Source of the DNA: Hyalangium minutum
GTDB lineage: Bacteria > Myxococcota > Myxococcia > Myxococcales > Myxococcaceae
Length of the DNA: 64,000 nucleotides
Direction of reading: 5' to 3'
Assembly: GCF_000737315.1 (NCBI RefSeq)
Contig: NZ_JMCB01000006.1
Coordinates: 973,820-1,037,819 of the forward strand
A model generated the notes under the pieces. The model saw only the letters and a list, made by a program, of their open reading frames with translations. It made no database searches and was not told where the DNA came from. Made by a program: the position numbers and the translations under genes. Positions 26,054 through 41,850 of the stretch are shown here, piece by piece. Numbering within the stretch: position 1 is the stretch's first letter; the number at the start of each line of letters is the position of its first letter.

Positions 26054-27694
26054 ATGAAGACGCACCTGACGATGAAGAAGCTCGCGCTGGCCTCGCTCAC
26101 GGTGGCCTCGGTGCTCGCCCTGGGGGCGGGCTGCGCCATGCGGGCTCCCGCGTATGAGCCGCCCCCGACGATGGAGGCCTCACCGCTCCCCCGCGGCGAC
26201 AGCCCGGCGGACTTCTCCAAGCTCGCGGTGGTGAACGGCAAGCCGTTCGCGGACATGTACTTCAAGAGCTACGGGGTGAACCCCACCATCGACACGGAGG
26301 AGGAGAGCGTCTCCACCTTCTCGGTGGACGTGGACACGGCCTCGTACACGCTGGCGCGCTCGTACCTGGCGCGCGGCCACCTCCCGGAGGAGGAGGCCAT
26401 CCGCGTGGAGGAGTTCATCAACGCCTTCAAGTACGACTACCCGGATCCGGGCGCTGCGCCCTTCGGGGTGCAAGTGGAGGCGTTCCCGTCTCCGAACCGC
26501 CGCGGCTACCACGTGCTGCACGTGGGCATCAAAGGCCGCGAGGTGAGCACCTCCGAGCGCCTGCCCGCCCACCTCGTCTTCACCATCGACGTGTCCGGCT
26601 CCATGGGCATGGAGAACCGGCTGGGGCTGGTGAAGCGCTCGCTGGCGCTGCTGGTGGAGCAGCTGGACGCGCGGGACTCGCTGGCCATCGTCGTGTACGG
26701 AGACAGCGCGCGCACGGTGCTCGAGCCCACGCGCGCCACGAACCGCTCGCGCATCCTCGCGGCCATCGACGCGCTGCAGCCGGAGGGCGCCACCAACGTC
26801 CAGGCTGGGCTCGAAGTCGCGTACGCCATCGCCGCCAGCCAGGTGCGCGAGGGCACCGTGAGCCGCGTCATCCTGTGCTCGGATGGCGTGGCCAACAGCG
26901 GGATTACAGGCGCGGATGCCATCTTCGAGTCCATCAAGGAGTACGCGCGGCGCGGCGTGCGGCTCACCACGGTGGGCTTCGGCATGGGCAACTACAATGA
27001 CGTGCTGATGGAGCGGCTGGCGCAGCAGGGCGATGGGCAGTACGCGTACGTGGACCAACTGCCGCAGGCCCGGCGCCTCTTCGTGGAGCAGCTCACCGGC
27101 ACGCTGCAGCTCATTGCCCGGGATGTGAAGGTGCAGCTGGAGTTCGACAAGGCGGTCATCTCCCGCTACCGGCTCATCGGCTTCGAGAACCGGCTGCTGA
27201 ACAAGGAGGACTTCGCCAACGACAAGGTGGACGCGGGCGACATCGGCGCGGGCCACACCGTCACGGCGCTGTATGAGGTGAAGTTCCGGGATGCCCAGGC
27301 GCTCACGGCGCCCGCGCTCGCCACGCTGCGCATCCGCTACAAGGACCCGGGCACCCTGCTGGAGGCGGGCAGCTCTGAGAAGGTGGAGAAGGCGCTGCCC
27401 ACGGCCATTGTCCGCCAGAGCCTGGAGGCGGCCGCGGGGCCGACGCAGCTGTCCCTGGTGGTGGCGCTGTTCGCGGAGAAGCTGCGCGGCTCGTACTGGG
27501 CTCGCAACGTCTCCTATGCGGACCTGCTGCGGCTGTGGAGCCAGCTGCCCGAGCGCATCCGCGCCCGCGAGGATGCGGGCGAGCTGCGGCAGCTCATCCA
27601 GCAGGCGCGCTCGTATGACAAGCGCGGGGACAAGTTCGAGAAGATGACGCCCGTGGCGGAGATGGACTTCGACCGCGTGCCGGTGGTGCGCTAA
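26054..27694 (+). CDS. VWA-domain lipoprotein (YfbK-like)
   Basis: Lipobox LGAGC, STFSVDVDTASY, MIDAS DVSGSM...TN..CSDG, VTALYEV. Confidence 0.9.
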   Translation: MKTHLTMKKLALASLTVASVLALGAGCAMRAPAYEPPPTMEASPLPRGDSPADFSKLAVVNGKPFADMYFKSYGVNPTIDTEEESVSTFSVDVDTASYTLARSYLARGHLPEEEAIRVEEFINAFKYDYPDPGAAPFGVQVEAFPSPNRRGYHVLHVGIKGREVSTSERLPAHLVFTIDVSGSMGMENRLGLVKRSLALLVEQLDARDSLAIVVYGDSARTVLEPTRATNRSRILAAIDALQPEGATNVQAGLEVAYAIAASQVREGTVSRVILCSDGVANSGITGADAIFESIKEYARRGVRLTTVGFGMGNYNDVLMERLAQQGDGQYAYVDQLPQARRLFVEQLTGTLQLIARDVKVQLEFDKAVISRYRLIGFENRLLNKEDFANDKVDAGDIGAGHTVTALYEVKFRDAQALTAPALATLRIRYKDPGTLLEAGSSEKVEKALPTAIVRQSLEAAAGPTQLSLVVALFAEKLRGSYWARNVSYADLLRLWSQLPERIRAREDAGELRQLIQQARSYDKRGDKFEKMTPVAEMDFDRVPVVR

Positions 27695-27852
27695 TCGTGC
27701 CCCTTCCATGCTCCCGAGTCTCGCCAAGCTGGTCGAGGACGCCAGGCGGACGCTGAGCCGGAGTCCGACGCATCCTGTCCCCGTTCCGAGTGGAACAGGC
27801 CTGTCCGTTTGGGGCTCCTGCGCCGCGAAGACAGTCCTCCGCCTAGGGTGCG

Positions 27853-28590
27853 TCACAACACGCGGGCGGCGCGGGCCTCCTCCAGCGTGTACTCCTGCAT
27901 CATGGTACCGAAGGGGCCTGTCTTCTGGATGAGCCACGCGCAAGAGCCCTGCGGCATGTAGAAGTCCTCCTCGAAGGGAGCCAGCCCCAGGTGGCGCAGG
28001 TAGTCCTTGAGCATCTCAAAGGTGAAGCGGTCCCTTACCCGGCGCTCCTGGTACTTCTCCACCTGCTCGAAGGGGAAGGGCTCACCTTCCTGGTCGAAGA
28101 CCCAGCGGCCTCCATCATTGGAAGCGCTCAGGGCGCGCACATAGTTGTGGATCTTCCCCGGCTGCTCCGGGCCGAACACATCCAGCATGACGGCACCATA
28201 GCGGCCTTGGTCCCCGCGCAGCGTGTGGGGCACGGCGACCACCCGCAGGCACCGGATGCTCAACCTCCGGGCCATGGAGCGCATGGGGCTGGCGGCATCC
28301 GTCCCGGTCCACTGGCTGGAGACATAGGCTGTCCAGGCGCTGCGCGTCGGGATGAACAGGTGCCGCTGGGTTTCTCCACCGTTCAGGGGCAGCAGGCTGG
28401 AGAGAACTTGCTCCAGGGTGCCCGAGACGGGGAGCACCTCCACGGTGATGCCACGAGGCGTCATCACCTCTCTCTCCCACGTGGCGAAGGCTTGCGCCGC
28501 CTGCTCCGCCCCCAACTCCAGAAAGCCCATCGTCGAGGTGACAGGCGCCCAGCGGTCCTCCAGCAGCAGACCCTTCATCTCTTGCGTCAT
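27853..28590 (-). CDS. Putative immunity protein (copy 1)
   Basis: 245 aa, directly downstream of the toxin. Near-identical paralogue at 40165-40902. Confidence 0.75.
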   Translation of the reverse strand: MTQEMKGLLLEDRWAPVTSTMGFLELGAEQAAQAFATWEREVMTPRGITVEVLPVSGTLEQVLSSLLPLNGGETQRHLFIPTRSAWTAYVSSQWTGTDAASPMRSMARRLSIRCLRVVAVPHTLRGDQGRYGAVMLDVFGPEQPGKIHNYVRALSASNDGGRWVFDQEGEPFPFEQVEKYQERRVRDRFTFEMLKDYLRHLGLAPFEEDFYMPQGSCAWLIQKTGPFGTMMQEYTLEEARAARVL

Positions 28591-28601
28591 TCAGGCTCGC
28601 C

Positions 28602-30497
28602 TCATTCCTCGGGGATGATGATCCGGATGATGATGGCTTTGGGGTCGTTGTTGGTGAGGCGCGACTGGTGTGCAGGGCCACGGCCCGAGGTGGGTGAGTC
28701 GTACTCCACCTGATAGCGCTGGCCCTGATAATCGAATTGCAGATCCGGCCGATTGATTCCCACGCGCTGACCATTCTTGAGCGTCAGTTGCTGCTGGTTC
28801 ACCCGAATGTTCTCGGCGTGTAGCACGTCCTCCAGGTACTTGATGTCCTCCTGGAGTTGAGCATTCTGCCTGGGGCTGGGGCTAATGGGACGGGTCGTCG
28901 GGCGTAGGCCTGGCACCTTCGGCTTGACGGTGACGTCCTGACGCAAGCGTGGGCCGGCTGGCACCTGCGGCGTTGGGTTCTTGCCCGTGAGCGCTTGAGC
29001 CAGTTCGGGTGAGGGCGCGAGGGTGCCCGGCGCCGGAGGGAGCGGTGCTGGCGCCGGAGCGGGTTCTGGAGCAGGCGCCACAGCTCTCGGCGGAGCGAGT
29101 GGAGCCTCCACCCTGCCAGGGCCCACCGGCTCCACCGGCTCCGGGACACCCCACCCGGGCACCGGCCGCGTGGCGGTCATCAACTTCCCAGCGGCCACTC
29201 CCACCGCAAGCGCTGTGAAGAACTCCTGGGCCGCGCCGAGCCGGGACACCTCCTGCTCGGTGAACATCTCCTGGCCACTGCCCATCTGCCACCCGCGCTC
29301 CAGCGCGAAGTGCAGCGGGTTGACATCCCTCGCCAGCCCATACACCCCCAGCAAGGCCTGAAGGGTGGCTGGGTGAGTCATGAAGTAGTGCTTGACGATT
29401 CTCCGCCGGTTCTCCCAGTGGGCATATCCCTCGGCGGCGGCGGCTCCCGTGCCCAGGCGCCGCTCCATGTCCTCGCGCTGCTCGGGGGTGAGGCGCTGTG
29501 GCGTCACCAACGGCCACATGCGGAGAGCCTCGGGCACCGTCTCCGCGCTCATGGCCTCGGCGTACTTGCGCTCCCACTGCGACAGCGGGTGGCTCCAGTG
29601 AGCCATGTCCTCCCAGGGGCCCGAGTTCCACCAGGCCTGGACGGCCCCGGGCTTCTGGAGCAGGAGAATCTGCTGAATCACGTCCCGCTCTGCGAAGGCG
29701 GTGAGCGCCACCTGCGAAGCAGCGGGCTCAAGCCCCGCCGTCCTCGCCTCCGCCGCGGAGGAGGGGCCTGGCTCACGTGGCGGCAAGGCGCCTTGTGGAC
29801 TCTGGGCGGATTGCTGCGCCCACGGGCGCTGAGGCGGGGCGAGGGCAGGCGTGCGGGACGGTGCGCCGAAGCCGAAGAGAAGACCCACCCCGAGGGAGAA
29901 CACTCCTTCGCCTTGCGCGAAGCGGGAGGGCGGGAACGCGTACACGCCCGAAAGGCCCACCTCCAGCCCGATGCCGCCACGGATGGCGTGCACTCCGGCT
30001 TCGCCGCCAGCGCGCAGCCGGGGAGGCCACCAGGAGCGGGGGGTAACTGCCGCTCCACCGAGGGCCTTGAAGTACAGCGGCCCCTCCCCCGTGAAGCGCG
30101 CCACCGCGTCGGTGGACAGCTCCCACGCTCCGGCGGAGGTGGCTGGGGGCAGCAAGCTCCAGCGCGCCCCGAGCCCCTGGCCTGCTTCCGACAAGCCCCA
30201 CAGGCTCACGCTGTACGAGGTGCGCGGTGCCCACGCGCTACCCAGTGCAGCGCCCCGGGAAACCTCTGCCCCCACCACGGCCCGCATCTGGCTCGTCTCG
30301 TCAGAGGCCTGTGCCCCGGGCGAGGCCAAGACGGCCAGCAACAAGAGGCTGACAGCCGCATGCCACCGCGAGGGTTGGCGCGCTCCCGGGCCCCTCATTC
30401 GGCAAACCCTTCGAGGGCGGTGCCTCCGGCGCTGGCGCCGAGCAACACAAGGGACAGCGCTCCGGCCTTCCAGAGAAGCCTCTGCCACGGCCAGCAT
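28602..30497 (-). CDS. Polymorphic toxin: signal peptide, 8-strand OM beta-barrel-like domain, helical linker, C-terminal PD-(D/E)xK-like nuclease (copy 1)
   Basis: Amphipathic strands ending GVGLLFGF, a Pro-rich linker, and a C-terminal RVNQQQ..GINRPDLQFDY.G.RY.VEYD. Confidence 0.75.
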   Translation of the reverse strand: MLAVAEASLEGRSAVPCVARRQRRRHRPRRVCRMRGPGARQPSRWHAAVSLLLLAVLASPGAQASDETSQMRAVVGAEVSRGAALGSAWAPRTSYSVSLWGLSEAGQGLGARWSLLPPATSAGAWELSTDAVARFTGEGPLYFKALGGAAVTPRSWWPPRLRAGGEAGVHAIRGGIGLEVGLSGVYAFPPSRFAQGEGVFSLGVGLLFGFGAPSRTPALAPPQRPWAQQSAQSPQGALPPREPGPSSAAEARTAGLEPAASQVALTAFAERDVIQQILLLQKPGAVQAWWNSGPWEDMAHWSHPLSQWERKYAEAMSAETVPEALRMWPLVTPQRLTPEQREDMERRLGTGAAAAEGYAHWENRRRIVKHYFMTHPATLQALLGVYGLARDVNPLHFALERGWQMGSGQEMFTEQEVSRLGAAQEFFTALAVGVAAGKLMTATRPVPGWGVPEPVEPVGPGRVEAPLAPPRAVAPAPEPAPAPAPLPPAPGTLAPSPELAQALTGKNPTPQVPAGPRLRQDVTVKPKVPGLRPTTRPISPSPRQNAQLQEDIKYLEDVLHAENIRVNQQQLTLKNGQRVGINRPDLQFDYQGQRYQVEYDSPTSGRGPAHQSRLTNNDPKAIIIRIIIPEE

Positions 30498-30599
30498 GTG
30501 TCACCCCTTCATGCGAGGAGGTGATCAGGTTAGAGGGCCGCCACGGAGAAGAGGAGGATCCGCCGGGTGGCACCCGTGCTTCGGCTCCAGCTCCCTTGT

Positions 30600-30696
30600 C
30601 GAAGCTGTTGGGGAGGGTGACGGGGCCGGGATTCTCGATGGCGGCGAGGGCTGCGCGTAACAGGGAGTAGAAGAGCGCGGCCACCTCGGTGCCTCG
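30600..30696 (-). pseudogene. IS66-family transposase C-terminal remnant
   Basis: The minus strand reads RGTEVAALFYSL|LRAALAAIENPGPVTLP, which resembles the IS66 TnpC tail with an internal deletion. Confidence 0.6.
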
Positions 30697-31533
30697 TTGG
30701 GAGAAGCTTGCCGCCCTGGAGGAATTCCTCTCCTACGAGTCCTTCAAAGAACTTCGCCTGCAGGTGCTGCCCCATCGGCGGGATTTCTTGTCGCCGGAGG
30801 ATCCCGGGGCCGCTGTCCGGATAGCGGGGCCCGGAATTTGGTCCGAACGATGGGGTCCACCTCAGCTATCAGCCGCCATGTCGTGGCGACGGCGGGCCAC
30901 TGCATCTGCAAGCGCAGGCAGGGAGCGTCGCCTGGTCAAGGGAGTCAAGCCATCATTGACGCGTCAGCCTGTTTCGAGGGCGCGAAGGTGGAGACGGTCT
31001 TCTATAAACCCCCGGTCGAGGAAGGGGCCCGGAATTTGGTCCGAACGATGGGGTCGCGGGGGAAGATCTACAAGGGCAGGGCCCGACCGCACCCCGCGTT
31101 GAAGGTCATGCTCGATGAACAGGGTCGCGTCATGTCGAGCCGTGCGGATCTCGCCCTCATCTTTCTGGAGAAGCCCCTGGAGTCTCCGGGCATTCCTCTG
31201 GCTGATGAGGACACCCGGGTGGGTGACTCCGTCATCATCGCGGGATATGGCTACGACGAAGTCGCTGACGTGTTCGGCTGGGAGCGCCGCTTCTGCACCA
31301 ACAAGATCACCCGGCTCTCGCTGACGGAGGATGAGCGGATCCTGATTGAGCAGCCGGGAGGGCATCAGTACAGGCAGGACAGTGGCGGACCCTGTCTTCG
31401 CCAGGGAGAGAAGGGGCCCGAGATTGTGGGGATCTCCAGCCGCTGGCTTGGAGAAGGAGCCGCCTGCACGAGCATTCATGGCCACCTTGATTGGCTGCGC
31501 GAGGAAGTCCGTCGTGCGGAAACACCTGATTGA
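30697..31533 (+). pseudogene. Trypsin-like (S1) serine protease with scrambled N-terminus
   Basis: Catalytic triad motifs TAGHC, ADLAL and QDSGGPC are present. There is no signal peptide, and an ectopic 32-bp copy precedes the His motif. Confidence 0.7.
30826..31055 (+). repeat. Exact 32-bp direct repeat GGGGCCCGGAATTTGGTCCGAACGATGGGGTC
   Basis: Copies at 30826-30857 and 31024-31055, 198 bp apart. Confidence 0.9.
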
Positions 31534-31591
31534 GGAAGGACGGTCGAACGATGACTCGATGGCAGGTGGCAGTCATCTGACGCTGCCTGAC

Positions 31592-31639
31592 TGCACAGGG
31601 GTGCTGGTTGCGCCTCGCGTTGTCGTGACGGCCGGCCAC
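31592..31639 (+). pseudogene. Second trypsin fragment
   Basis: CTGVLVAPRVVVTAGH followed by unrelated sequence. Confidence 0.55.
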
Positions 31640-31715
31640 CCCCTAAAGGCTGGGCATCTTCCGGGAGCCTCTGGGTATGATGGAGCCTCGACCCAAGAGG
31701 GGGGCTTGACGCGAG

Positions 31716-32522
31716 ATGGTGCCTCGGACGGCCTTGGTGAGGAACAATGTGCAGGTTCTGGGCAAGGGCCAGAGCCTGATCATGTTTGCCCACGGTTTTG
31801 GGAGCACGCAGGCCGTCTGGCAGGCGCAGGTGCAAGCCTTCGCGGAGACGCACCGCATCCTCCTGTTTGATCACGTGGGCGCCGCAGGCGGCAACCTGGC
31901 GGCCTACAGCCCCTACCGCTATGCGAGCGTGGAGGGCTACGCCGCGGACATGCTCGAGGTTCTGGAGGCGGTGGACGCCCGAGACGTCATCTATGTCGGG
32001 CACTCCATGAGCGGCATGGTGGGGTTGCTGGCGGGACTGGCCCGGCCCGAGCTCTTCCGGGGCATGGTCTTCATCAGCTCCTCGCCTCGCTACCTCAACG
32101 CTCCAGGCTATGTGGGAGGCTTCGAGCGGGCGGACCTGGATGCGCTCTATGCCTCCATGGAGGCGGACTTTGGCGCCTGGGCCAGTGGCTTTGCCCGGGC
32201 CGTGGTGGGCTCGTCCGCCACGCCCGAGCTGGCGGAGTCCTTCGCACGGTCGCTCGGCTCGCTCCGCCCCGATGTGGCGCTCGGCGTGGCGCGCGTCATC
32301 TTCGAGGCGGATCTGCGAGAGAAGGTGCCCAAGCTCTCGCTGCCCACCTGGATCCTCCAGCCGCGCAGCGACCTGGCCGTGCCTCGCGAGGTGGGGAGCT
32401 ATCTGGCGCACCACCTCCCTCAGGGCCAACTCGTCGTCGTGGACAGCGAGGGGCACCTGCCCCACCTCACCTCTCCTGGCCAGGTCAATGCCATCCTGGC
32501 GGAGATCCTCTCGGAACTCTGA
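31716..32522 (+). CDS. RsbQ/KAI2/D14-like alpha/beta hydrolase
   Basis: NNVQVLG..MFAHGFG..Q..W, YVGHSMSG (Ser), DLAVP (Asp), EGHLPHL (His). Confidence 0.92.
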   Translation: MVPRTALVRNNVQVLGKGQSLIMFAHGFGSTQAVWQAQVQAFAETHRILLFDHVGAAGGNLAAYSPYRYASVEGYAADMLEVLEAVDARDVIYVGHSMSGMVGLLAGLARPELFRGMVFISSSPRYLNAPGYVGGFERADLDALYASMEADFGAWASGFARAVVGSSATPELAESFARSLGSLRPDVALGVARVIFEADLREKVPKLSLPTWILQPRSDLAVPREVGSYLAHHLPQGQLVVVDSEGHLPHLTSPGQVNAILAEILSEL

Positions 32523-32527
32523 GCGCC

Positions 32528-35026
32528 ATGGCGGAAGCGTCTCCATCGCCCGGCGAGCGCTCACTGCCAGAGTGGGTGGCTGCCGCCGTGGCGGCGCTCT
32601 CCCCCAGGGATGGGAAGCAGCTGGAGCGCGTGCTGGAGGTCGCCCGGAGCGCCTGTGGGGCGGACCTGGCGCTGGCGCTTCGCCGGGTGGATGCCGTCAC
32701 GCTCTTCGAGCTGGGAGGCGCGCCCGCTCAACATCCGAGCCTGCCTCCGGTGGGAGAGTCCCTCTTCCGGGGCGTGCTGGGCGGGCAGGGCTGCTCCTTC
32801 TTCGAGCCCGAGCAGGCTGAGCCAGGGTGGCCTTACTCCCTTCGCGGGGCGGTGGCGCTCGTGCCCTGGGAGTCCGTGGAGGAGCGGCGCGGCGCCGTGC
32901 TGCTCGTGCGCCGGGGCACCCAGTCCTTCTCTCCGGACGAGCGCGGCCGGCTCGAGGCCCTGTGTGGGCTGCTGGTCACCGTCGCCCGCGAGAGTGACTT
33001 GGAGCGCCTGACGGCCGGGCTGCGCGAGCGGGTGGAGGCCATCTCTCACGCGCTCCCCTGCGGGCTCATCTTCCTGAACCCGCAGGAGGCCGAGGCATGG
33101 CTGAACGAGCCCGCGGCCGAGCTGCTCGGGCTCCCGGCGGGCAAGGCGCCCGCGCACCTCGTTGCCCAGGCCATGGCCGCGCTGCGCGAGCGCGCCGTGA
33201 ACCGCCAGGAGCTGGAGGTGAAGCTGGAGCACCTGTTCCGGGGAGGTGCCTCGGAGCTTCGGGACGTGCTGTGGCGCTTCGAGAACCCTCACCGCATCTT
33301 CTCCGTGTCCTGCGTGCTGGCCAGCCGAGGGCCCACGCGCGGCCGGCTCTGGGCCTTCCTCGACGTCACCCAAGCCCAGGACACGCTCGCGCTGCTGGAG
33401 CAGCAGAACCTCGCGCTGGAGGCCGCCCGGCGCGAGGCGGACGCTGCCAACGCCGCCAAGTCCCAGTTCCTGGCCACCATGAGCCACGAGATTCGCACGC
33501 CCATGAACGGGGTGCTCGGCATGACTCACCTCCTGCGGCGCACGCCCCTGTCCCAGGAGCAGCAGGAGTACGTGGACGTCATCCACACCAGCGGCGAGGC
33601 GCTGCTGACGATCATCAACGACATCCTCGACTTCTCGAAGATCGAAGCGGGTGCCCTGGAGCTCGACAGCGCGGCGTTCTCGCTGCGGCAGACCCTGGAC
33701 GAGTGTGTGCGTCTGCTGAGCCCCTCGGCCGAGGCGCGGGGGCTGTACTGCCGCCAGGAAGTCGAGCCCACCGTGCCGGACACGCTGGTGGGCGATCGGA
33801 TGCGGCTGCGGCAGATCCTCCTCAACCTCGTGGGCAATGCGCTGAAGTTCACGCACCAGGGCGGAGTGACTGTCCACGTGTCGCGAGGCGAGGCGCCAGC
33901 CTCGGGCCTGCCCTCCGAGGTGCGGGTGTGCTTCGCCGTGAGCGACACGGGCATCGGCATTCCCGCCGAGCGCATGGATCGGCTCTTCCGCACCTTCAGC
34001 CAGGTGGACTCCTCCACCAGCCGCCACTATGGGGGAACGGGCCTGGGGCTCGTCATCAGCCAGCGCCTCGCGCAGATGATGGAGGGCCACATCCACGTGC
34101 GGAGCACCGAGGGCGTGGGCTCCACGTTCACGCTCGAGGTGGTGCTGCAAGAGGGCTCGGAGGCCTCGCTCCCGCCCCGCACCGAGGTGGACGAGAGCCT
34201 GGGTGCCCGCCACCCGCTGCGCGTCCTCCTGGTGGAGGACAACCCCATCAACCAGAAGGTGAACCTGCGCGTCTTCCAGCGCCTGGGCTACGAGGCGCAC
34301 GTGGTGGGCAACGGGCTGGAGGCGCTCGCGGCCATGCGGGAGGCGGCCTATGACGTGGTCTTCATGGACGTCCACATGCCGCGCCTGGACGGCCTGGAGG
34401 CGGCCCGGCGGGTGCGCGCCGATGCGGCGGAGTACGGGTCGCCGTACATCGTCGCCATGACGGCGAGCGCGGTGAAGGGAGATCGCGAGCGCTGCCTCCA
34501 GGCGGGGATGAACGACTACGTGGCCAAGCCCGTGGAGTTCCCGATGCTCGCCGCGGCCTTGGAGCGGGCCGCCTTCGCCAGGGCCCAGGGGCTCTCTCTC
34601 TCTCTCTCTCCTGCTCCGCTGCAGGAACTCGCCTCCCCGGAGCCATCCTCCGCCAACGAGGCGCCGGTGCTCCAGAGGGAGATCCTCCAGCGGCTGGAGC
34701 TGCTCGTCGGCAACAACCGGGAGGAGCTCGGTACATTGACGCGGGACTTCCTGAAGAACGCCCGTAAGCACCAGGAGGCCCTGCTCCAAGGCGTCCTGGA
34801 CAGGGACGCGCGGGCGTTGGGGGAGCATGCCCACAGCCTCCGGTCGAGCGCGGCGCTCTTTGGGGCCTCCCAGCTGTCGCGCTTCTGCGAGGAACTCGAA
34901 CAGTGCGCGGAGGCGGGCTTCTCGGATCAGCTGAAGGCGCTGGCCAAGTCTACGGCGCAAGCTTTCGAGCAGGCGCGGGCGGCGCTCGAGGAGGCCGTGC
35001 CCGAGGCCTGTCCCGCGCGGAGCTGA
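32528..35026 (+). CDS. Hybrid histidine kinase (GAF/PAS-like, HisKA, HATPase, REC, Hpt)
   Basis: KSQFLATMSHEIRTPMNG, NLVGNALKFT, GGTGLGL, VFMDVHMP, AHSLRSSA. Confidence 0.92.
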   Translation: MAEASPSPGERSLPEWVAAAVAALSPRDGKQLERVLEVARSACGADLALALRRVDAVTLFELGGAPAQHPSLPPVGESLFRGVLGGQGCSFFEPEQAEPGWPYSLRGAVALVPWESVEERRGAVLLVRRGTQSFSPDERGRLEALCGLLVTVARESDLERLTAGLRERVEAISHALPCGLIFLNPQEAEAWLNEPAAELLGLPAGKAPAHLVAQAMAALRERAVNRQELEVKLEHLFRGGASELRDVLWRFENPHRIFSVSCVLASRGPTRGRLWAFLDVTQAQDTLALLEQQNLALEAARREADAANAAKSQFLATMSHEIRTPMNGVLGMTHLLRRTPLSQEQQEYVDVIHTSGEALLTIINDILDFSKIEAGALELDSAAFSLRQTLDECVRLLSPSAEARGLYCRQEVEPTVPDTLVGDRMRLRQILLNLVGNALKFTHQGGVTVHVSRGEAPASGLPSEVRVCFAVSDTGIGIPAERMDRLFRTFSQVDSSTSRHYGGTGLGLVISQRLAQMMEGHIHVRSTEGVGSTFTLEVVLQEGSEASLPPRTEVDESLGARHPLRVLLVEDNPINQKVNLRVFQRLGYEAHVVGNGLEALAAMREAAYDVVFMDVHMPRLDGLEAARRVRADAAEYGSPYIVAMTASAVKGDRERCLQAGMNDYVAKPVEFPMLAAALERAAFARAQGLSLSLSPAPLQELASPEPSSANEAPVLQREILQRLELLVGNNREELGTLTRDFLKNARKHQEALLQGVLDRDARALGEHAHSLRSSAALFGASQLSRFCEELEQCAEAGFSDQLKALAKSTAQAFEQARAALEEAVPEACPARS
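34592..34610 (+). repeat. (CT)9C simple sequence repeat in the REC-Hpt linker
   Basis: ctctctctctctctctctc, currently in frame (LSLSLS). Confidence 0.85.
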
Positions 35027-35117
35027 GCCCGGGAGTGGGTGGATCTGAGAAGGTTCCTTCGATTCCCTGTAGAGTCACCGCCCGCTCGGCATGAGCCGGC
35101 GTGGGAGGTGCCGCACG

Positions 35118-35468
35118 ATGCACGGTATCGGGACAGCGCTCTGCCTCTTCATTGTCGCCGAACACGTGGCCTTCATGGTCCTGGAGATGGTCTTCTGGCA
35201 GAAGCCGCTGGGCCGGGCCCTCTTCAAAAGGTCGGTCGAGGAAGCGCGGACCTCCGCGAGCCTGGCCGCGAACCAGGGGCTCTACAATGGCTTCCTCGCC
35301 GCTGGGCTGGCGATGGCGGTCTTTCTGGGCGAGGGCCGCTTCACGGCGTTCTTCCTGGCCTGCGTCGTGGTGGCGGGAACCTTCGCGGGCATCACGGTGA
35401 GCCGCGGCATCTTCTTCGTCCAGGCAGCGCCGGCCCTCCTCGCGGGCCTCGTGCTGTTCGTCTCATAG
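35118..35468 (+). CDS. DUF1304 membrane protein
   Basis: AEH..F..LEM..W...LAANQGLYNGFLAAGL...VQAAPALL. Confidence 0.9.
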   Translation: MHGIGTALCLFIVAEHVAFMVLEMVFWQKPLGRALFKRSVEEARTSASLAANQGLYNGFLAAGLAMAVFLGEGRFTAFFLACVVVAGTFAGITVSRGIFFVQAAPALLAGLVLFVS

Positions 35469-35480
35469 AGCGATAGCGCC

Positions 35481-36842
35481 GTGACCCACCCCACCATCGA
35501 GCGCCACGCGCGCCATGTGAACCCCGCCTTCGTGAAGCTGCTGGGAGTGCTCGGCTATGGCCGGGTGTTTACGCGGGCGCGGGATGTGTGGCTCTGGGAT
35601 GATCAGGAGCGGCAGTACCTCGACTTCCTGGCGGGGTTCGGCTCGGTGAACCTGGGCCACAACCACCCGAGGCTCATGGCGCGGCTGCAGCGCTTCCTGG
35701 CCGAGGACGCGCTCCACTTCTGCCACGTGGGCCTGACGGAGCACTCGGCGCTGCTGGGCGAGGCACTCTGCCAACGGCTCGATGCTCCGCTGGAGGTGGT
35801 GCTGCTGGCGTCCAGCGGCGGCGAGGCGGTGGAGGCCGGCATGAAGCTGGCCCGCGCGGCCACGCGGCGCTCGGCCTTCGTGTTCTGCGAGGGAGGCTTT
35901 CACGGGACGAGCTTCGGCACGCTCTCGATGATGGGCTCCGAGCGCATGCGCAAGCCCTTCGAGCCGCTGCTCGCGGGTTGCCACCGCGTGCCCTTCGGGG
36001 ACCTGGAGGCACTGGAGCGGGTGCTCCGGCGCGAGAAGGTCGCGGCGTTCGTGGTGGAGCCGCTGCTGGCCGAGGGCGGCGTCGTCTCTCCGCCTCCGGG
36101 GTATTTAAAGGAGGCACAGGCGCTGTGCCGCAAGCACGGGGCCCTGCTGGTGCTGGACGAGGTGCAGACGGGGCTGGGCCGCCTGGGCCGGCGCTTCGCG
36201 TACCAGGGCCAGGGCTTCGTGCCGGATGTGCTGGTGCTGGCCAAGGCGCTGAGCGGCGGAGCGGTGCCGGTGTCCGCGGCCATCACCTCCACGGAGATTC
36301 ACGGGCGCGCCTACGGAGGGACGGAGCGGTTCGATCTGCACAGCACCACGTTCGGTGGCAACGCGCTGGCGTGCACGGCGGCCATGGAGACGCTGGCCAT
36401 CGTGGATGACGAGGGGCTCGTGGCGAACGCCGCCGCGAGAGGGACCGAGCTGCTGGAGGGCCTGCGGAAGCGGCTCGCGGGGCATCCGCTGGTGCGGGAG
36501 ATCCGCGGCGAGGGATTGCTGGTGGGCGTGGAGCTGGGGCCCACCGAGAGCGGGCTGCTCAACCGCCTGGTTCCGAGCCTGGTGGGACAGGTGTCGGAGA
36601 AGGTCTTCGGACAGTGGGCGGCGCTGCGGCTGTTGGAGGAGGGCATCGTGTGCCAGCCAGCCTCGCACCGGTGGGACGTGCTGCGGCTGGAGCCGCCGCT
36701 GACGGTGAAGTCCGAGGAGATTCAGCGGGTGGTGGATGCGGTGGCGCGCATCCTGGGGGACTACACGGGGCTGGTGCCGCTGCTGCGCGATGTGGTGGCG
36801 AGGGTGGGCGAGCAGCGCAAGCGGGAAGGAGCGTTCCGATGA
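35481..36842 (+). CDS. Class III PLP aminotransferase (ornithine-AT / HpnO-like)
   Basis: FHGTSFG, EPLLAEGG, DEVQTGLGR, PDVLVLAKALSGG, STTFGGN. Confidence 0.9.
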   Translation: MTHPTIERHARHVNPAFVKLLGVLGYGRVFTRARDVWLWDDQERQYLDFLAGFGSVNLGHNHPRLMARLQRFLAEDALHFCHVGLTEHSALLGEALCQRLDAPLEVVLLASSGGEAVEAGMKLARAATRRSAFVFCEGGFHGTSFGTLSMMGSERMRKPFEPLLAGCHRVPFGDLEALERVLRREKVAAFVVEPLLAEGGVVSPPPGYLKEAQALCRKHGALLVLDEVQTGLGRLGRRFAYQGQGFVPDVLVLAKALSGGAVPVSAAITSTEIHGRAYGGTERFDLHSTTFGGNALACTAAMETLAIVDDEGLVANAAARGTELLEGLRKRLAGHPLVREIRGEGLLVGVELGPTESGLLNRLVPSLVGQVSEKVFGQWAALRLLEEGIVCQPASHRWDVLRLEPPLTVKSEEIQRVVDAVARILGDYTGLVPLLRDVVARVGEQRKREGAFR

Positions 36843-37858
36843 GCCTGGCCGAGCTTCGGCGGGACGCGCGCTTCGCGGCGGGGTTGGTGGCGCGGCGGCC
36901 CTTCCAGGTGCTGGTGCAGGTGACGAACCGCTGCAACGCCACGTGCTCCTTCTGCGACTTCTGGCCCAACGGCGCGCACCCTCGCGAGGAGCTGACGGCG
37001 GACGACTTCCGCAAGCTGTCGGCCGAGCTGGCGAAGATCGGCACATTCCTCATCTCCATCGAAGGCGGGGAGCCGTTCGTCCGGCAGGACCTGGTGGAGA
37101 TCGTCCGGGCGTTTGGAGAGCACCACGTGCCGCTGCTGTACACGAACGGTTGGTTCGTGACCGAGGAGAAGGTGAAGGCGCTGTTTGCGGCGGGACTGGC
37201 GCAGGTGGGCGTGTCCATCGACTACTCGGAGGCGGCGCGGCACGACGCCAAGCGCGGACTGAAGGGCGGCACGGAGCGGGCGTGGCAGGCGGTGGACCTG
37301 TTCCGGAAGCACGCGCCGCACGGGAACCGTCAAGTGCACGTGATGACGGTGCTGATGCGCGACAACCAGAACGACTTGGAGGCGCTGCTAAAGCAGAGCG
37401 CCGCGCATGACGTGGGCCACTGCCTGACGCTGATCTCCACGCAGGGGTACCGGCGCGGGAAGGACTCGCCGGACGGTGTGCCGGACGTGTCGCTGTCACC
37501 GCAACTGCTGTCGCTGTGGAAGCAGTACCCGCACTTCCGCATGTTCCGCGACTACCTGGGGAGCGTGGACACGTTCCTCGCGGACCGAAGCCAGCTCCCG
37601 GCGTGCCAAGCGGGGACGCAGAGCTTCAACATCGATCACCTGGGGAACGTGTCCCCGTGCATCGAGAAGATCGATCGCCGGTTCGGGAACGTGCGGGACG
37701 AGCCGCTGGCGGCCATCCTCCAGCGTATGCGCGAGGGCGGGACGGCGCGGGGCTGCCAGGACTGCTGGACGCTCTGCCGGGGCTTCAACCAGAGCCTCGG
37801 GCAGGGGGGCACACTGAAGGGCTGGATGGACCTGAGCACGCGCATGCGCTCGGCGTGA
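36839..37858 (+). CDS. Radical SAM protein with SPASM/twitch-type C-terminus
   Basis: CNATCSFC, EGGEPF, YTNG, CQAG..PCIE..CQDCWTLC. Overlaps the aminotransferase stop. Confidence 0.9.
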   Translation: MSLAELRRDARFAAGLVARRPFQVLVQVTNRCNATCSFCDFWPNGAHPREELTADDFRKLSAELAKIGTFLISIEGGEPFVRQDLVEIVRAFGEHHVPLLYTNGWFVTEEKVKALFAAGLAQVGVSIDYSEAARHDAKRGLKGGTERAWQAVDLFRKHAPHGNRQVHVMTVLMRDNQNDLEALLKQSAAHDVGHCLTLISTQGYRRGKDSPDGVPDVSLSPQLLSLWKQYPHFRMFRDYLGSVDTFLADRSQLPACQAGTQSFNIDHLGNVSPCIEKIDRRFGNVRDEPLAAILQRMREGGTARGCQDCWTLCRGFNQSLGQGGTLKGWMDLSTRMRSA

Positions 37859-38267
37859 GGTGCCGCGCGCTCAGGCTTGGGGCCCAGGAGCTACTGGATC
37901 GACCTTACCCATTGCTTCGCTGGCTTGAACTCGGTGGAGGAAGCCGGGGAGGAGAGTTTGAGAGGGGGCCAGCGGCGCCGCTGCTGAAGCTCATCCACGA
38001 GGCTGCGGCTCGTTGCCTCACCTGCTTCCTCACGCGGGAAGGTGGAGCAGCGCGCTAGATGCAACCCAGCAGGCAGGACAGTGGCAGCGGCGCGGCGTTA
38101 CGTGGGGAGGGAGCAGGGACGTGGCGAGCGCCCAGGCGTCAGCGTCGGGCGCGAGGCTGCCCCCGCAGGGGGGCTGGAGGTGAAGCACGGGCGCCGCCCG
38201 GCGGATCCTCCTCTTCTCCGTGGCGGCCCTCTAGCCTGATCACCTCCTCGCATGAAGGGGGTGACAC

Positions 38268-40154
38268 ATGCTGGCCGTGGCAGAGGATTCTCTGGAAGGC
38301 CAGAGCGCTGTCCCTTGTGTTGCTCGGCGCCAGCGCCGGAGGCGCCGCCCTCGAAGGGCTTGCCGAATGAGGGGCCCGGGAGCGAGTCAGCCCTCGCGGC
38401 TCCATGCGGCTGTCAGCCTCTTGCTCATGGCAGTCTTCGCCGCGCCCGGGGCGCACGCCTCCGGAGAGACAAGCCAGATGCGGGCCGTTGTGGGGGCGGG
38501 TATCTCTCAGGGCACCGCGCTGGGCAGCCCCTGGGCGCCGCGCACCTCGTACAGCGTGAGCCTGTGGGGCCTGTGGGAAGCAGGCCAGGGGGTGGGGGCG
38601 CGCTTGACGTTGCTGCCCCCGGCCACCTCCGCCGGAGCGTGGGAGCTGTCCACGGACGCGGTCGCGCGCTTCACGGGTGAGGGGCCGCTGTACTTCAAGG
38701 CCCTCGGTGGAGTGGCCGTCACCCCCCGCCCCTGGTGGCCTCCGCGGCTGCGCGCCGGGGGCGAAGTCGGGGTGCACGCCATCCGTGGAAGCATTGGCCT
38801 GGAGGTGGGCGTTGGTGGCGTGTACTCGTTCCCGCCCTCGCGGCTCTCGCAAGGCGAAGGGGTGCTCTCCCTCGGGGTGGGAATCCTCTTCGGCTTCGGC
38901 ACACCGTCCCGCACGCCTGCTCTCGTCCCGCCTCAGCGCCCGTGGGCGCAGCAGTCCGCTCACAGTCCACAAGGCGCCTTGCCACCACGTGGCCCAGGCT
39001 CCTCATCCGCAGCGGAGGCGAGGACGGAGGGGCTTGCGCCCGCTGCTTCGGAGGTGGCGCTCACCCCCTTCGGAGAGCGGGACGTGATTCAGCAGATTCT
39101 GCTGCTCCAGAAACCCGGGGCCGTCCAGTCCTGGTGGGCCTCGGGCCCCTGGGAGGACATGGCTCACTGGAGCCACCCGCTGTCGGAGTGGGAGCGCAAG
39201 TACGCCGAGGCCATGAGCGCGGAGACGGTGCCCGAGGCCCTCCGCATGTGGCCGCTGGTGACGCCCGAGCGCTTCACCCCCGCGCAGCGCGAGGACATGG
39301 AGCGGCGCCTGGGCACAGGAGCCGCCGCCGCCGAGGGGTATGCCCACTGGGAGAACCGGCGGAGAATCGTCAAGCACTACTTCATGACGCACCCAGCAAC
39401 CCTTCAAGCCTTGCTGGGGGGGTATGGGCTGGCGAGGGATGTCAACCCGCTGCACTTCGCGCTGGAGCGCGGGTGGCAGATGGGCAGTGGCCAGGAGATG
39501 TTCACCGAGCAAGAGGTGTCCCGGCTCGGCGCGGCCCAGGAGTTCTTCACGGCGCTGGCGGTGGGAGTGGCCGCTGGGAAGTTGATGACCGCCACGCGGC
39601 CGGTGCCCGGGTGGGGTGTCCCAGAGCCGGTGGGCCCTGGCAAGGTGGAGGCTCCGCCCGCTCCGGCGAGAGCTGTGGCGCCTGCTCCAGAACCCGCTCC
39701 GGTGCCAGCACCGCTCCCTCCGGCGCCGGGCACCCTCGCGCCCTCACCCGAACTGGTTCAAGCGCTCACGGGCAAGAACCCAACGCCGCAGGTGCCCGCC
39801 GGCCCACGCTTGCGTCAGGACGTCACCGTCAAGCCGAAGGTGCCAGCCCTACTCGAGACAACCCGTCCCATTAGCCCCAGCCCCAGGCAGAATGCTCAAC
39901 TCCAGAGGGATATCGAGTATGTGAAGAATGAGCTACTCGCCGAGAACATTCGGGTGAACCAGCAGCAACTCACGCTGGAGAACGGCCAGCGCGTGGGAAT
40001 CAACAGGCCGGACCTGCAATTCGATTACAAGGGCCAGCGCTATCATGTGGAGTACGACTCACCCACCTCGGGCCGTGGTCCTCGCCACCAGTCGCGCCTC
40101 ACCGCCAACGACCCGGAAGCCATCATCATCCGGATCATCATGCCTGAGGAATGA
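38268..40154 (+). CDS. Polymorphic toxin, beta-barrel plus PD-(D/E)xK-like tip (copy 2)
   Basis: Paralogue of 28602-30497, with RPDLQFDYKGQRYHVEYD. Confidence 0.75.
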   Translation: MLAVAEDSLEGQSAVPCVARRQRRRRRPRRACRMRGPGASQPSRLHAAVSLLLMAVFAAPGAHASGETSQMRAVVGAGISQGTALGSPWAPRTSYSVSLWGLWEAGQGVGARLTLLPPATSAGAWELSTDAVARFTGEGPLYFKALGGVAVTPRPWWPPRLRAGGEVGVHAIRGSIGLEVGVGGVYSFPPSRLSQGEGVLSLGVGILFGFGTPSRTPALVPPQRPWAQQSAHSPQGALPPRGPGSSSAAEARTEGLAPAASEVALTPFGERDVIQQILLLQKPGAVQSWWASGPWEDMAHWSHPLSEWERKYAEAMSAETVPEALRMWPLVTPERFTPAQREDMERRLGTGAAAAEGYAHWENRRRIVKHYFMTHPATLQALLGGYGLARDVNPLHFALERGWQMGSGQEMFTEQEVSRLGAAQEFFTALAVGVAAGKLMTATRPVPGWGVPEPVGPGKVEAPPAPARAVAPAPEPAPVPAPLPPAPGTLAPSPELVQALTGKNPTPQVPAGPRLRQDVTVKPKVPALLETTRPISPSPRQNAQLQRDIEYVKNELLAENIRVNQQQLTLENGQRVGINRPDLQFDYKGQRYHVEYDSPTSGRGPRHQSRLTANDPEAIIIRIIMPEE

Positions 40155-40164
40155 GGGGGCCTGA

Positions 40165-40902
40165 ATGACGCAAGAGATGAAGGGACTGCTGCTGGAGGAC
40201 CGCTGGGCGCCTGTCACCTCGACGATGGGCTTTCTGGAGCTGGGGGCGGAGCAGGCGGCGCAAGCCTTCGCCACGTGGGAGAGAGAGGTGATGACGCCCC
40301 GTGGCATCACCGTGGAGGTGCTCCCCGTCTCGGGCACCTTGGAGCAAGCCCTCTCCAGCCTGCTGCCTCTGATCAGTGGGGAGAGGCGGCGGCGCCTGTT
40401 CATCCCGACGCGCAGCGCCTGGACAGCCTACGTCGCCGACCAGTGGACTGGGACGGATGCCGCCAGCCCCATGAGCGCCATGGCCCAGAGGCTAGGCATC
40501 CGGTGTCTGCGGGTGGTCGCCGTGCCCCACACGCTGCGCGGGAACCAAGGCCGCTATGGTGCCGTCATGCTGGATGTGTACGGCCCGAAGCAGCCGGGGA
40601 AACTCCACAACTATGTGCGCGCCCTGGGCGCTTCCAATGATGGAGGCCGCTGGGTCTTCAGCAATGTGGGTGAGCCCTTTCCCTTCGAGCAGGTGGAGAG
40701 GTATCAGGCGCGCCGGGTGACGGACCGCTTCACCTTCGAGATGCTCAAGGACTATCTGCGCCACCTGGGGCTGGCTCCCTTCGACGAGGACTTCTACATG
40801 CCTCCCGGCTCCTGCGCGTGGCTCCTCCAAAAAACAGGCCCCTTCGGCACCGTCATGCGGGAGTACACGCTGGAGGAGGCCCGCGCCGCCCACGTGTTGT
40901 GA
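40165..40902 (+). CDS. Putative immunity protein (copy 2)
   Basis: Paralogue of 27853-28590, starting 10 nt after the toxin stop. Confidence 0.75.
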   Translation: MTQEMKGLLLEDRWAPVTSTMGFLELGAEQAAQAFATWEREVMTPRGITVEVLPVSGTLEQALSSLLPLISGERRRRLFIPTRSAWTAYVADQWTGTDAASPMSAMAQRLGIRCLRVVAVPHTLRGNQGRYGAVMLDVYGPKQPGKLHNYVRALGASNDGGRWVFSNVGEPFPFEQVERYQARRVTDRFTFEMLKDYLRHLGLAPFDEDFYMPPGSCAWLLQKTGPFGTVMREYTLEEARAAHVL

Positions 40903-41163
40903 CGCACCCCAGACGGAGGACTGTCTTCGCGGCGCGCCCGGACGGCAGCCATGGTCGCCGCGTTGGAGTGCGCACCCAAGCCCACTACGCCTTCGCGAGG
41001 GCGGGACTGCGCCGCAGCAGGCCCGCTCGTGACTGGTACGCCAATTTCGAGGCCTACCTCATGTACGGCCACGTCACTCCTGCCGAATGGAAGGAAGCCG
41101 CCCAGTGGGAGTGGCAGCTCTACAACCTGCCCAGGACGGGCCCCCAAAATGGGTAAGGTCGAA

Positions 41164-41850
41164 TTACTGGATGTTGACTGTGGCGAGCTTGCGGTCCTGG
41201 TGCAGCTCCCAGAACTTCTCGGCGATGGTGGAGGCCTCGAGCGTCGCGTTGCCGGAGTCGAACGGGGTGCCCTTCACGGACGCGAGCACCACCACCTCAC
41301 CCACGTAGACGCCCTCACCGGCGAGCTTCTGGTGGAGCAGGCCCACGGTCTTGTGCTGCGCGGCCTTGGCGACCGCGAGTCCCATCGCATTCCAGGAGAC
41401 GGCCATCGCGTCGACCTGGGGGTCGTAGAACGAGAGGCCACCGCCGGTGACGAGCACCGCGCCCTTCTCCTTCTTCAAGTCGGACAGTGCCTCCTGGACA
41501 CCGGCCACCAGCCCGAGCACCGACACGCCGAGCGGGCCGTTCAGCTCCTCGACGGGTGAGCTCGTCAGGTCCCCCGCTCCACCGGCATAGGCGTTCCAGT
41601 GGAGCACTGCGATGGGCCCCAGCGAGGAGCGCACATCGCGGAGCATCGCGCGCACGGCCTGCGGGTTCGCGAGATCACAGGGAAAGGCCTTCGCGGTGAT
41701 GCCCGCGCTGGAGAGCGCCTCGGCGGCGGCCTTGAGCCGGTCCGCGCTGCGGGCGACGAGCGCGACCGCGAATCCTTCCTTGCCGAACCGGCGTGCCACT
41801 GCGTCAGAGATGCCAGGGCCATGACCACACACGACGAGGGTTCGTTTCAT
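41164..41850 (-). CDS. Short-chain dehydrogenase/reductase
   Basis: VCGHGPGISDAVARRF..VALVARS, LVTGGG, SxAKAA. Confidence 0.88.
   Translation of the reverse strand: MKRTLVVCGHGPGISDAVARRFGKEGFAVALVARSADRLKAAAEALSSAGITAKAFPCDLANPQAVRAMLRDVRSSLGPIAVLHWNAYAGGAGDLTSSPVEELNGPLGVSVLGLVAGVQEALSDLKKEKGAVLVTGGGLSFYDPQVDAMAVSWNAMGLAVAKAAQHKTVGLLHQKLAGEGVYVGEVVVLASVKGTPFDSGNATLEASTIAEKFWELHQDRKLATVNIQ

Follow-up and report, generated by a model that had tools for sequence, protein, structure and literature searches.

The question raised by this locus is whether a short segment lying between two convergent genes of the myxobacterium Hyalangium minutum is a mobile element, and if so, to which transposon it is related. 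The DNA analyzed here, referred to as the window, is a 64-kb stretch of the assembly GCF_000737315.1 (contig NZ_JMCB01000006.1, positions 973,820-1,037,819, forward strand), and coordinates given without a contig name are those of the window. The segment is 3.27 kb long, is located at the stop codon of a gene for an SDR-family dehydrogenase, and carries a predicted toxin gene and a putative immunity gene between terminal inverted repeats. An earlier note, made from the sequence alone, interpreted it as a cargo-only cassette mobilized in trans. The analysis described below indicates, with a probability of about 0.75, that the segment is a non-autonomous derivative of an unnamed Hyalangium transposon family, similar to the mobile insertion cassettes (MICs). 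MICs consist of passenger genes placed between inverted repeats of the insertion sequence (IS) type; they encode no transposase and can be mobilized by the cognate enzyme (PMC4337579).

The segment is a real insertion relative to an ancestral arrangement in which the SDR gene and a radical SAM gene are convergent neighbors. This empty site is present in the metagenome contig L004, whose SDR protein is 90% identical, and in the related loci L005/L006 (82%), where the two genes converge with a spacer of 20-32 nt and the SDR gene ends with TAG. The comparison of L004 with the window by blastn gave two alignments (43145-41162 and 37898-37469), which overlap by 10 nt in L004 at the duplicated site. 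When the element and one copy of the repeat are removed, the window is collinear with L004 and the spacers are equal in length. The empty-site sequence predicted for H. minutum is GGAGCTACTGGATGTTGAC. The earlier note had expected such a site in relatives and had proposed that the SDR stop codon was kept through the insertion, TAG before it and TAA after it. Both proposals are borne out, as the relatives have TAG and the present TAA comes from the right copy of the duplication.

The 15-nt inverted ends (TCGACCTTACCCATT on the left and its inverse AATGGGTAAGGTCGA on the right) and the 8-nt direct repeat (TACTGGAT, at 37892-37899 and 41165-41172) described in the earlier note were found as exact matches where it had placed them (37899-37913/41148-41162 and 37892/41165). 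The 15-mer has only these two matches in the window, even if three mismatches are allowed. It could be supposed that the inverted and direct repeats are chance matches in GC-rich DNA, and the window indeed includes 33 perfect 15-mer inverted pairs within 10 kb, most of them from two inverted toxin copies. The L004 comparison, however, fixes the boundaries of the insertion independently of the repeats, and the perfect 15-nt inverted repeat at both boundaries is therefore not explained by chance; the likelihood of such a coincidence is around 1e-8 by our own estimate. In addition, related elements in other genomes terminate in the same 15-mer, and their subterminal DNA is homologous as well. An origin of the repeats by chance is thus improbable in the extreme.

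Inside the element, three open reading frames (ORFs) are recognized, of 595-628 aa (38268 or 38367 to 40154), 245 aa (40165-40902), and 62 aa (40968-41156). The last one reads into the right inverted repeat and uses a TAA inside the repeat as its stop codon. None of the three belongs to any Pfam or NCBIfam family, hence no match to a transposase or a recombinase was obtained, and a tblastn search of the element with the related transposase described below was also negative, which agrees with the earlier statement that no recombinase is encoded inside. The classification as a miniature inverted-repeat transposable element was rejected, as such elements are a few hundred bp long without coding capacity, while this one is 3.27 kb long with two intact genes.

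The relatives of the element were revealed through its right segment, where one frame shows a raised GC content at third codon positions (0.77). An exhaustive HMMER search with this frame over 1.8 billion representative proteins detected one other cluster, P0242 (92 aa, 60% identity). On the contig of P0242 (L072, 1.2 kb), the end of an XRE-type gene is followed by the small gene and, 260 nt further on, by AATGGGTAAGGTCGA with similar preceding bases. A subsequent word-index search added three more relatives, one of which, P0243, is encoded on L073, a 70-kb contig of a Hyalangium metagenome-assembled genome (MAG).

L073 includes an 8.9-kb element, designated here as element B, with the exact 15-mer at 1690 (+) and 10562 (-). 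Its inverted repeats (1689-1713 and 10553-10577) match at 24 of 26 nt, and a perfect 8-bp target duplication, GTCGGCCC, abuts both ends. The 25-nt end of the family is TTCGACCTTACCCATTTTTTSGSAG. The 15-mer is thus tied to another insertion, as the interpretation in the earlier note requires, and this insertion carries a transposase. The genes of element B are, in order, a DUF2381/TIGR02268 gene, a Ser/Thr kinase gene, a gene of no assigned family, a gene for a helix-turn-helix (HTH)/peptidase-M78 regulator, a DDE transposase gene (415-422 aa), a tRNA_anti-like/Zn-ribbon gene, an XRE regulator gene, and the small gene. The left ~80 nt and the right ~175 nt of the window element are homologous to the two ends of element B; in the blastn comparison, 41051-41123 and 41131-41163 match its small gene and right tip, and the longer small-gene match (40989-41123) comes from L072 and from L074, another locus with the small gene. 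On the right, L072 and L073 have ~260 nt of subterminal DNA that the window element has lost by deletion. Because of the homology of the termini, the window element is understood as a deletion derivative of a B-like element, in which a toxin module takes the place of the interior.

Comparison with element B also clarified the register of the duplication. Judged by the L073 element, the ends are probably 16 nt long (TTCGACC...GGTCGAA) with an abutting 8-bp duplication. The same register in the window reads GGAG-CTACTGGA-TCGACC...GGTCGAA-TTACTGGA-TGTTGAC. The two copies of the duplication are then identical at 7 of 8 positions, and the one C/T difference turns the SDR stop from TAG to TAA. The register of the earlier note, TACTGGAT, gives 8 of 8 and is equally present in the sequence; the offset of 2-3 nt that it left at the right repeat is explained by the L073 register, with its 7/8 duplication and missing left-tip base. 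The base just outside the 15-mer is variable, being T in five of the eight ends.

These repeats bear on another explanation, that a circular cassette was integrated site-specifically or through microhomology, in an integrase- or integron-like manner, and that the 8-nt repeat is an att-like core. A direct repeat flanking an insert with no transposase inside would be expected in that case. Neither in nor next to the element is there an integrase, however; the flanking repeats share no common core (xTACTGGA in the window, GTCGGCCC in L073), and in two independent elements the duplication directly adjoins the inverted repeats on either side. Integration of a circular cassette is therefore considered very improbable.

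The distribution of the ends was analyzed further. A metagenome scan with TCGACCTTACCCATTKYNNSG, an extended end pattern that would match the ends of the window element exactly, returned 35 matches, compared with ~29 expected by chance according to our rough estimate. The only real relatives among them were from two JGI (Joint Genome Institute) metagenome contigs, L085 with a left end and L102 with a right end beside a DUF2381 fragment. The 15-mer alone has dozens of chance matches in large collections, and 50 single matches in viral contigs, with no pairs, were consistent with chance and were not accepted as family members. Outside the window there are six ends, and five of them carry the 15-mer without change; the sixth, which belongs to a second element of L073, designated element A, has two mismatches. 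The five unchanged ends come from the Hyalangium MAG and from three metagenome or SRA contigs. The DNA adjoining the 15-mer is only ~69-85% identical among the window, L072, L073, L085, and L102. Since the 15-mer is identical while the adjoining DNA is diverged, the pattern suggests that the ends are under selection, or homogenized, as transposase binding sites. The insertions in L072, L073 (element B), and L074 represent one old insertion, as their right flank is common to all three; L074 is a deleted copy at this site, from which L073 4583-9415 (4.8 kb of the interior) and the right end have been lost. No inverted repeat was found in L074 or in L075, which also carries a homologue of the small gene.

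Element A is represented by its right end, TCTGGGTAAGGTCGAA, at L073 1665-1680, and its 135-nt right subterminal region is 78% identical to that of element B. Ahead of this end (L073 1-1688) are a toxin gene with a SitA5 escort and an AHH nuclease domain, and an Imm11 immunity gene. Element B sits exactly 8 nt to the right of the element A end. By analogy with the MIC clusters of Xanthomonas, this placement could reflect end-adjacent targeting or array building.

The transposase of element B (P0246) has a DDE_Tnp_1 domain (PF01609, E = 1.5e-11) and a complete Y-2-R-3-E-6-K motif (YLNRWGVEEANRFTK, aa 330-344). The YREK motif marks the enzymes of the IS4 family, whose target duplications are 7-13 bp long (PMC2266710), such as 8-10 bp for IS4Sa, 8-9 bp for IS50, and 7-8 bp for ISPepr1 (PMC2266710). 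Because P0246 has the complete motif, the 8-bp duplications in L073 and in the window fit this enzyme. Among the NCBIfam models, IS701 gives the highest score (61 bits, cutoff 150), and the IS4 models score 32-49 bits (IS4_2, 49 against 152; IS4_1, 37 against 115). In IS701 elements the YREK motif is absent or incomplete and the duplication is 4 bp (PMC2266710). Assignment of P0246 to IS701 was rejected on the 8-bp duplication, the complete YREK, and the score of 61 against 150 bits.

The interior of the window element has a different history. A toxin scan of species-representative genomes yielded 15 loci with the same toxin-immunity module, from H. versicolor and several MAGs (other Hyalangium/Archangiaceae). 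Together with a second copy in the window (copy 2), the module is found in at least 16 places besides the element, a count that is a lower bound. None of the 15 loci has the 15-mer within two mismatches, and none has sequence corresponding to 37900-38060 or 40936-41162; copy 2 likewise has no inverted repeats and no transposon termini. The window element is therefore a composite, as ~160 nt on its left and 227 nt on its right differ in origin from the 2.87-kb interior. Since at least 16 other copies of the module lack these ends, the ends are not the usual route by which this toxin family spreads. The features are summarized in Table 1.

Table 1. Positions in the window of the features of the 3.27-kb element, its target site, and the second toxin-immunity module.
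Feature	Position	Strand	Remarks
Radical SAM/SPASM gene	36839-37858	+	Convergent neighbor of the SDR gene at the empty site in relatives
Left target-site duplication copy, CTACTGGA	37891-37898		Holds the original SDR stop (CTA = TAG on the minus strand); in L004 and L005 the homologous site is single-copy
Left terminal inverted repeat, TCGACCTTACCCATT	37899-37913	+	15-mer also at the left ends of element B (L073) and of L085
Left terminus	37899-37977	+	77% identity over ~80 nt with the left end of element B (blastn, L073 1690-1768)
Junction DNA between left terminus and toxin module	37978-38060		No relative in any locus compared
Toxin-immunity module (upstream region, toxin gene, immunity gene, ~33 nt)	38061-40935	+	2.87 kb; 80-92% nucleotide identity to other copies
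Predicted polymorphic toxin gene, 595 aa from the conserved start	38367-40154	+	Sec signal, N-terminal beta domain, helical domain, Pro-rich linker, C-terminal domain
Putative immunity gene, 245 aa	40165-40902	+	No family; 10 nt downstream of the toxin gene
Small-gene remnant of the transposon family	40989-41123	+	Homologous to P0242/P0243 (92-99 aa); truncated at both ends
Right tip	41131-41163	+	Matches the right tips of elements A and B in L073 (85%)
Right terminal inverted repeat, AATGGGTAAGGTCGA on the + strand	41148-41162	-	Exact reverse complement of the left 15-mer
Right target-site duplication copy, TTACTGGA	41164-41171		Source of the present SDR stop TAA
Target gene, SDR-family oxidoreductase	41164-41850	-	ORF intact; insertion at its stop codon
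Second module copy (copy 2)	27820-30598	-	91.4% identical in nucleotides to 38166-40935

In the mechanism proposed here, an L073-type DDE transposase would cut the target with an 8-bp stagger and join the ends. The window element would be unable to move alone and would require an enzyme of this type in trans. Illegitimate recombination or deletion would have brought the toxin module into the transposon in place of the region of the transposase and the cargo.

Several observations weigh against the derivation of the window element from this family by way of this enzyme. P0246 falls below every curated IS-family cutoff, and it is a singleton 90% cluster with no relatives in viral contigs; in the plasmid collection, the only matches are 27-28% identical proteins from Thermus and Deinococcus. 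It is linked to these ends by a single element. The ends begin with T(T)CGACC and not with 5'-CA or 5'-CT, the starts found in the IS4 family (PMC2266710). With P0246 as a tblastn query, nothing was found in the entire 64-kb window, so no such enzyme is encoded nearby. In the L073 register, the duplication in the window matches at 7 of 8 positions and the left tip is one base short, and the window copy may for these reasons be inactive. Finally, the toxin-bearing composite has no second copy among the 15 related loci or in the metagenome scan, although further members of the family of ends are present at other sites.

Part of these observations would also be accounted for if P0246 were a passenger of element B, or a decayed nested IS, and if another protein, encoded elsewhere, acted on the TCGACCTTACCCATT ends. 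Along with the low score to the best model, the lack of IS4-type tips, and the single linking element, the position of the gene is in line with this alternative, being in the middle of the element, where it is surrounded by unrelated cargo and separated by 2.6 kb from the nearest end; L074 lacks the whole 4.8-kb block that contains the gene. The deletion in L074, however, also truncates a neighboring gene and is thus a secondary loss. Around the transposase gene only an unconvincing 12-nt pair of inverted repeats (92%) was found, and because no inverted repeats flank the gene tightly, a nested IS is not a likely explanation. The HTH/M78 gene upstream is undamaged up to a distance of 22 nt from the transposase gene, and the observed duplication has the length of ~8-10 bp expected from the YREK motif. 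The interpretation of P0246 as a passenger is unlikely on this evidence.

The composite structure leaves two histories to be weighed, as a single copy fits replacement of the interior before the insertion, giving a mobilized cassette, or after it. In the latter case, a full-length element similar to element B was inserted at the SDR stop codon, and its interior was later replaced in place by the toxin module; the 3.27-kb unit itself has then never moved, and no mobilization in trans took place. Signs of such decay are indeed seen in the window copy, whose small gene has been cut short on both sides, whose right subterminal region has lost ~260 nt, and whose left tip is atypical. The large internal deletions of L074 show that members of this family do decay in place, the toxin module is present without these ends in 16 other places, one of them 10 kb away in the window, and the composite was seen once. 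On the other hand, the inverted repeats are still perfect, and there is no footprint of module exchange at 38061 or 40935. In L073, moreover, an unrelated pair of SitA5/AHH toxin and Imm11 genes abuts another right end, which suggests recurrent carriage of toxins near the right end. Decay in place is somewhat doubtful on balance, although it deserves serious weight, and the non-autonomous, MIC-like derivative is preferred.

The predicted toxin encoded in the element is well supported as one member of a putative toxin-immunity pair by its architecture. Its conserved helical domain (aa 224-410) is 56% identical to that of proteins ending in YwqJ-like or DddA-like deaminase domains, and the joining of this region to alternative C-terminal toxin domains indicates a polymorphic-toxin architecture. 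The C-terminal domain of the window toxin is ~100 aa long and belongs to no recognized family. The putative immunity gene is kept together with the toxin C-terminus in all copies of the module. Two orphan modules, in which a complete immunity gene is accompanied by only the 3'-terminal ~110 nt of a toxin gene, were found in L018 (11442-12297) and L021 (1458-2344). Orphan immunity modules are typical of polymorphic toxin loci.

The N-terminus of the toxin, MRGPGASQPSRLHAAVSLLLMAVFAAPGAHASGETSQ, is a Sec-type signal peptide without Cys, and the consensus of 37 homologues also lacks the lipobox Cys. The search of the NCBIfam library with this toxin gave no family at E <= 1 and no SitA escort model, while the L073 toxin matches SitA5_escort with 5.5e-27 in the same library. 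The identification of the window toxin as SitA was rejected on these two grounds, the missing lipobox Cys and the missing escort-model match. A role in kin discrimination may be supposed by analogy.

Structure prediction gave a partial view of the toxin. The AlphaFold model has a mean predicted local distance difference test score (pLDDT) of 54, with a confident helical domain. The beta-rich region of aa 1-180 shows a weak Foldseek match to 8-stranded outer-membrane barrels (Ail, OmpA, and OmpX; E ~2e-3) at low pLDDT. If the toxin is anchored in the outer membrane, it would represent a delivery format unlike that of the SitA lipoproteins. In the low-confidence model, the C-terminus (aa 495-595) has an alpha-beta5-alpha-beta topology with RPD...VEYD, and is possibly a nuclease of the PD-(D/E)xK type. 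Foldseek gave no match for this domain, Pfam gave none either, and sequence searches of the PDB with the toxin tip and the immunity protein returned only noise.

Among known systems, a close parallel is found in the MICs. The MIC231 of Bacillus cereus is derived from IS231 of the IS4 family (Chen et al. 1999, as cited in PMC4337579), and its mobilization in trans was shown experimentally; the IS231 group is known for carrying passenger DNA (PMC2266710). The window element is similar to MIC231 in having passenger genes between IS-type ends, no transposase, and a duplication of the cognate length, and both are related to a larger element that bears a transposase and also carries passenger DNA. 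The window element differs in its ends, its transposase lineage, and its host, which belongs to Myxococcota; its cognate is an 8.9-kb element known from one MAG, and its mobilization in trans is a proposal made from the sequence.

The MICs derived from TnXax1 carry TALE (transcription activator-like effector) genes and other type III effector genes in Xanthomonas (PMC4337579). They resemble the window element as transposase-less units with the inverted repeats of a larger transposon, "weapon" genes, and target duplications, and they resemble the present family in that neighboring cassettes sometimes abut and that some copies of the cargo genes lie outside the MICs. They are of the Tn3 family, with long inverted repeats, a GAGGG tip, a 5-bp duplication, and many copies per genome, whereas the window element has inverted repeats of 15-25 nt, an 8-bp duplication, an IS4-like DDE enzyme as its presumed partner, and a single toxin-bearing copy. 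The L073 transposase resembles the IS4 family in its DDE_Tnp_1 domain, its complete YREK, and a duplication of 8 bp, within the range of the family. The IS4 family elements are 1.2-1.8 kb long (PMC2266710); in contrast, the L073 element is far larger, with many passenger genes, T(T)CGACC ends, and a transposase that scores below the cutoffs.

The earlier reading of the locus as a cargo-only mobile cassette is thus retained in part. The transposon-type ends, the target duplication, the lack of a recombinase, and the toxin-immunity architecture agree with it, while the description as an "undescribed dissemination route" does not stand, as transposase-less cassettes with IS-type ends are already described as MICs (PMC4337579). 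What is new is the family, along with its host group and its cargo, within a kind of element already known.

In myxobacteria, the sitAI loci are reported to lie on Mx-alpha prophage-like units, on plasmids, and beside "other mobile genetic elements" (PMC5562445, PMC10047993). Like the window module, they are polymorphic toxin-immunity pairs of myxobacteria that occur in connection with mobile DNA and have many paralogous copies, and a true SitA5-type pair lies beside an end of this transposon family in L073. The window toxin differs in having neither a lipobox nor a SitA escort match, and the sitAI papers (PMC5562445, PMC10047993) define no transposon vehicle with inverted repeats and target duplication. 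In a review table of kin-discrimination systems on mobile elements, the row for transposons has only contact-dependent inhibition (CDI) systems, and the word transposase is absent from all 17 papers that matched a literature query on sitAI, SitA5, or self-identity barcodes.

The toxin-immunity repertoires of myxobacteria are thought to diversify by horizontal transfer, for which the vehicles named so far are Mx-alpha units, plasmids, and "other mobile elements" (PMC5562445, PMC10047993). The family described here offers a vehicle defined by sequence, with defined ends, a defined duplication length, and a candidate transposase, that can be searched for in every myxobacterial genome. A more general model can be formulated, in which a dedicated family of Hyalangium, characterized by the ends TTCGACCTTACCCATT, a duplication of 8 bp, and a divergent transposase similar to IS4, gives rise to transposase-less derivatives that repeatedly capture toxin-immunity modules beside the right end, as with the window toxin and the SitA5/AHH-Imm11 pair of L073; these derivatives would be mobilized in trans and inserted beside each other's ends, and would in this way assemble and shuffle the strain-specific toxin repertoires by which kin groups are defined. 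This model is quite unlikely in its full extent. If toxin-bearing derivatives are common, the arrival of single toxin-immunity pairs among ordinary housekeeping genes would be accounted for; if they are not, the window element is just another decayed transposon, with a toxin module inside it by accident.

Some minor observations were made on copy 2 of the module. It is located within a 7.8-kb block (27690-35480) that is absent from the syntenic region of L005, where the VWA and aminotransferase genes are ~490 nt apart; both toxin copies in this neighborhood are accordingly insertions. The block also includes genes for a hybrid histidine kinase, an alpha/beta hydrolase, and a DUF1304 protein, as well as non-coding debris. 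A direct repeat of 32 nt, gaccccatcgttcggaccaaattccgggcccc, is present on the minus strand a short way upstream of copy 2, at 31055-31024 and 30857-30826 (198 nt apart); it may represent a small repeated element or a scar left by such an element. An IS66-like remnant upstream of copy 2 was considered and not upheld on translation, and a direct-repeat motif at the module borders (AGGAC.GT....GCGGCGCG) was discarded as unconvincing in GC-rich DNA and absent from copy 2.

Two further observations concern the relatives of the transposon. In L075 (236-2675), the homologue of the small gene is interrupted by an unrelated element with an rve-type transposase and an AAA_22 ATPase, which are TniA/TniB-like or Mu-like. 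Element B carries, at L073 1890-4583, a gene of DUF2381, which corresponds to the paralogous family TIGR02268 of M. xanthus, and a Ser/Thr kinase gene. As a DUF2381 fragment also lies at the right end in L102, the expansion of the DUF2381/TIGR02268 paralogues may partly stem from these elements.

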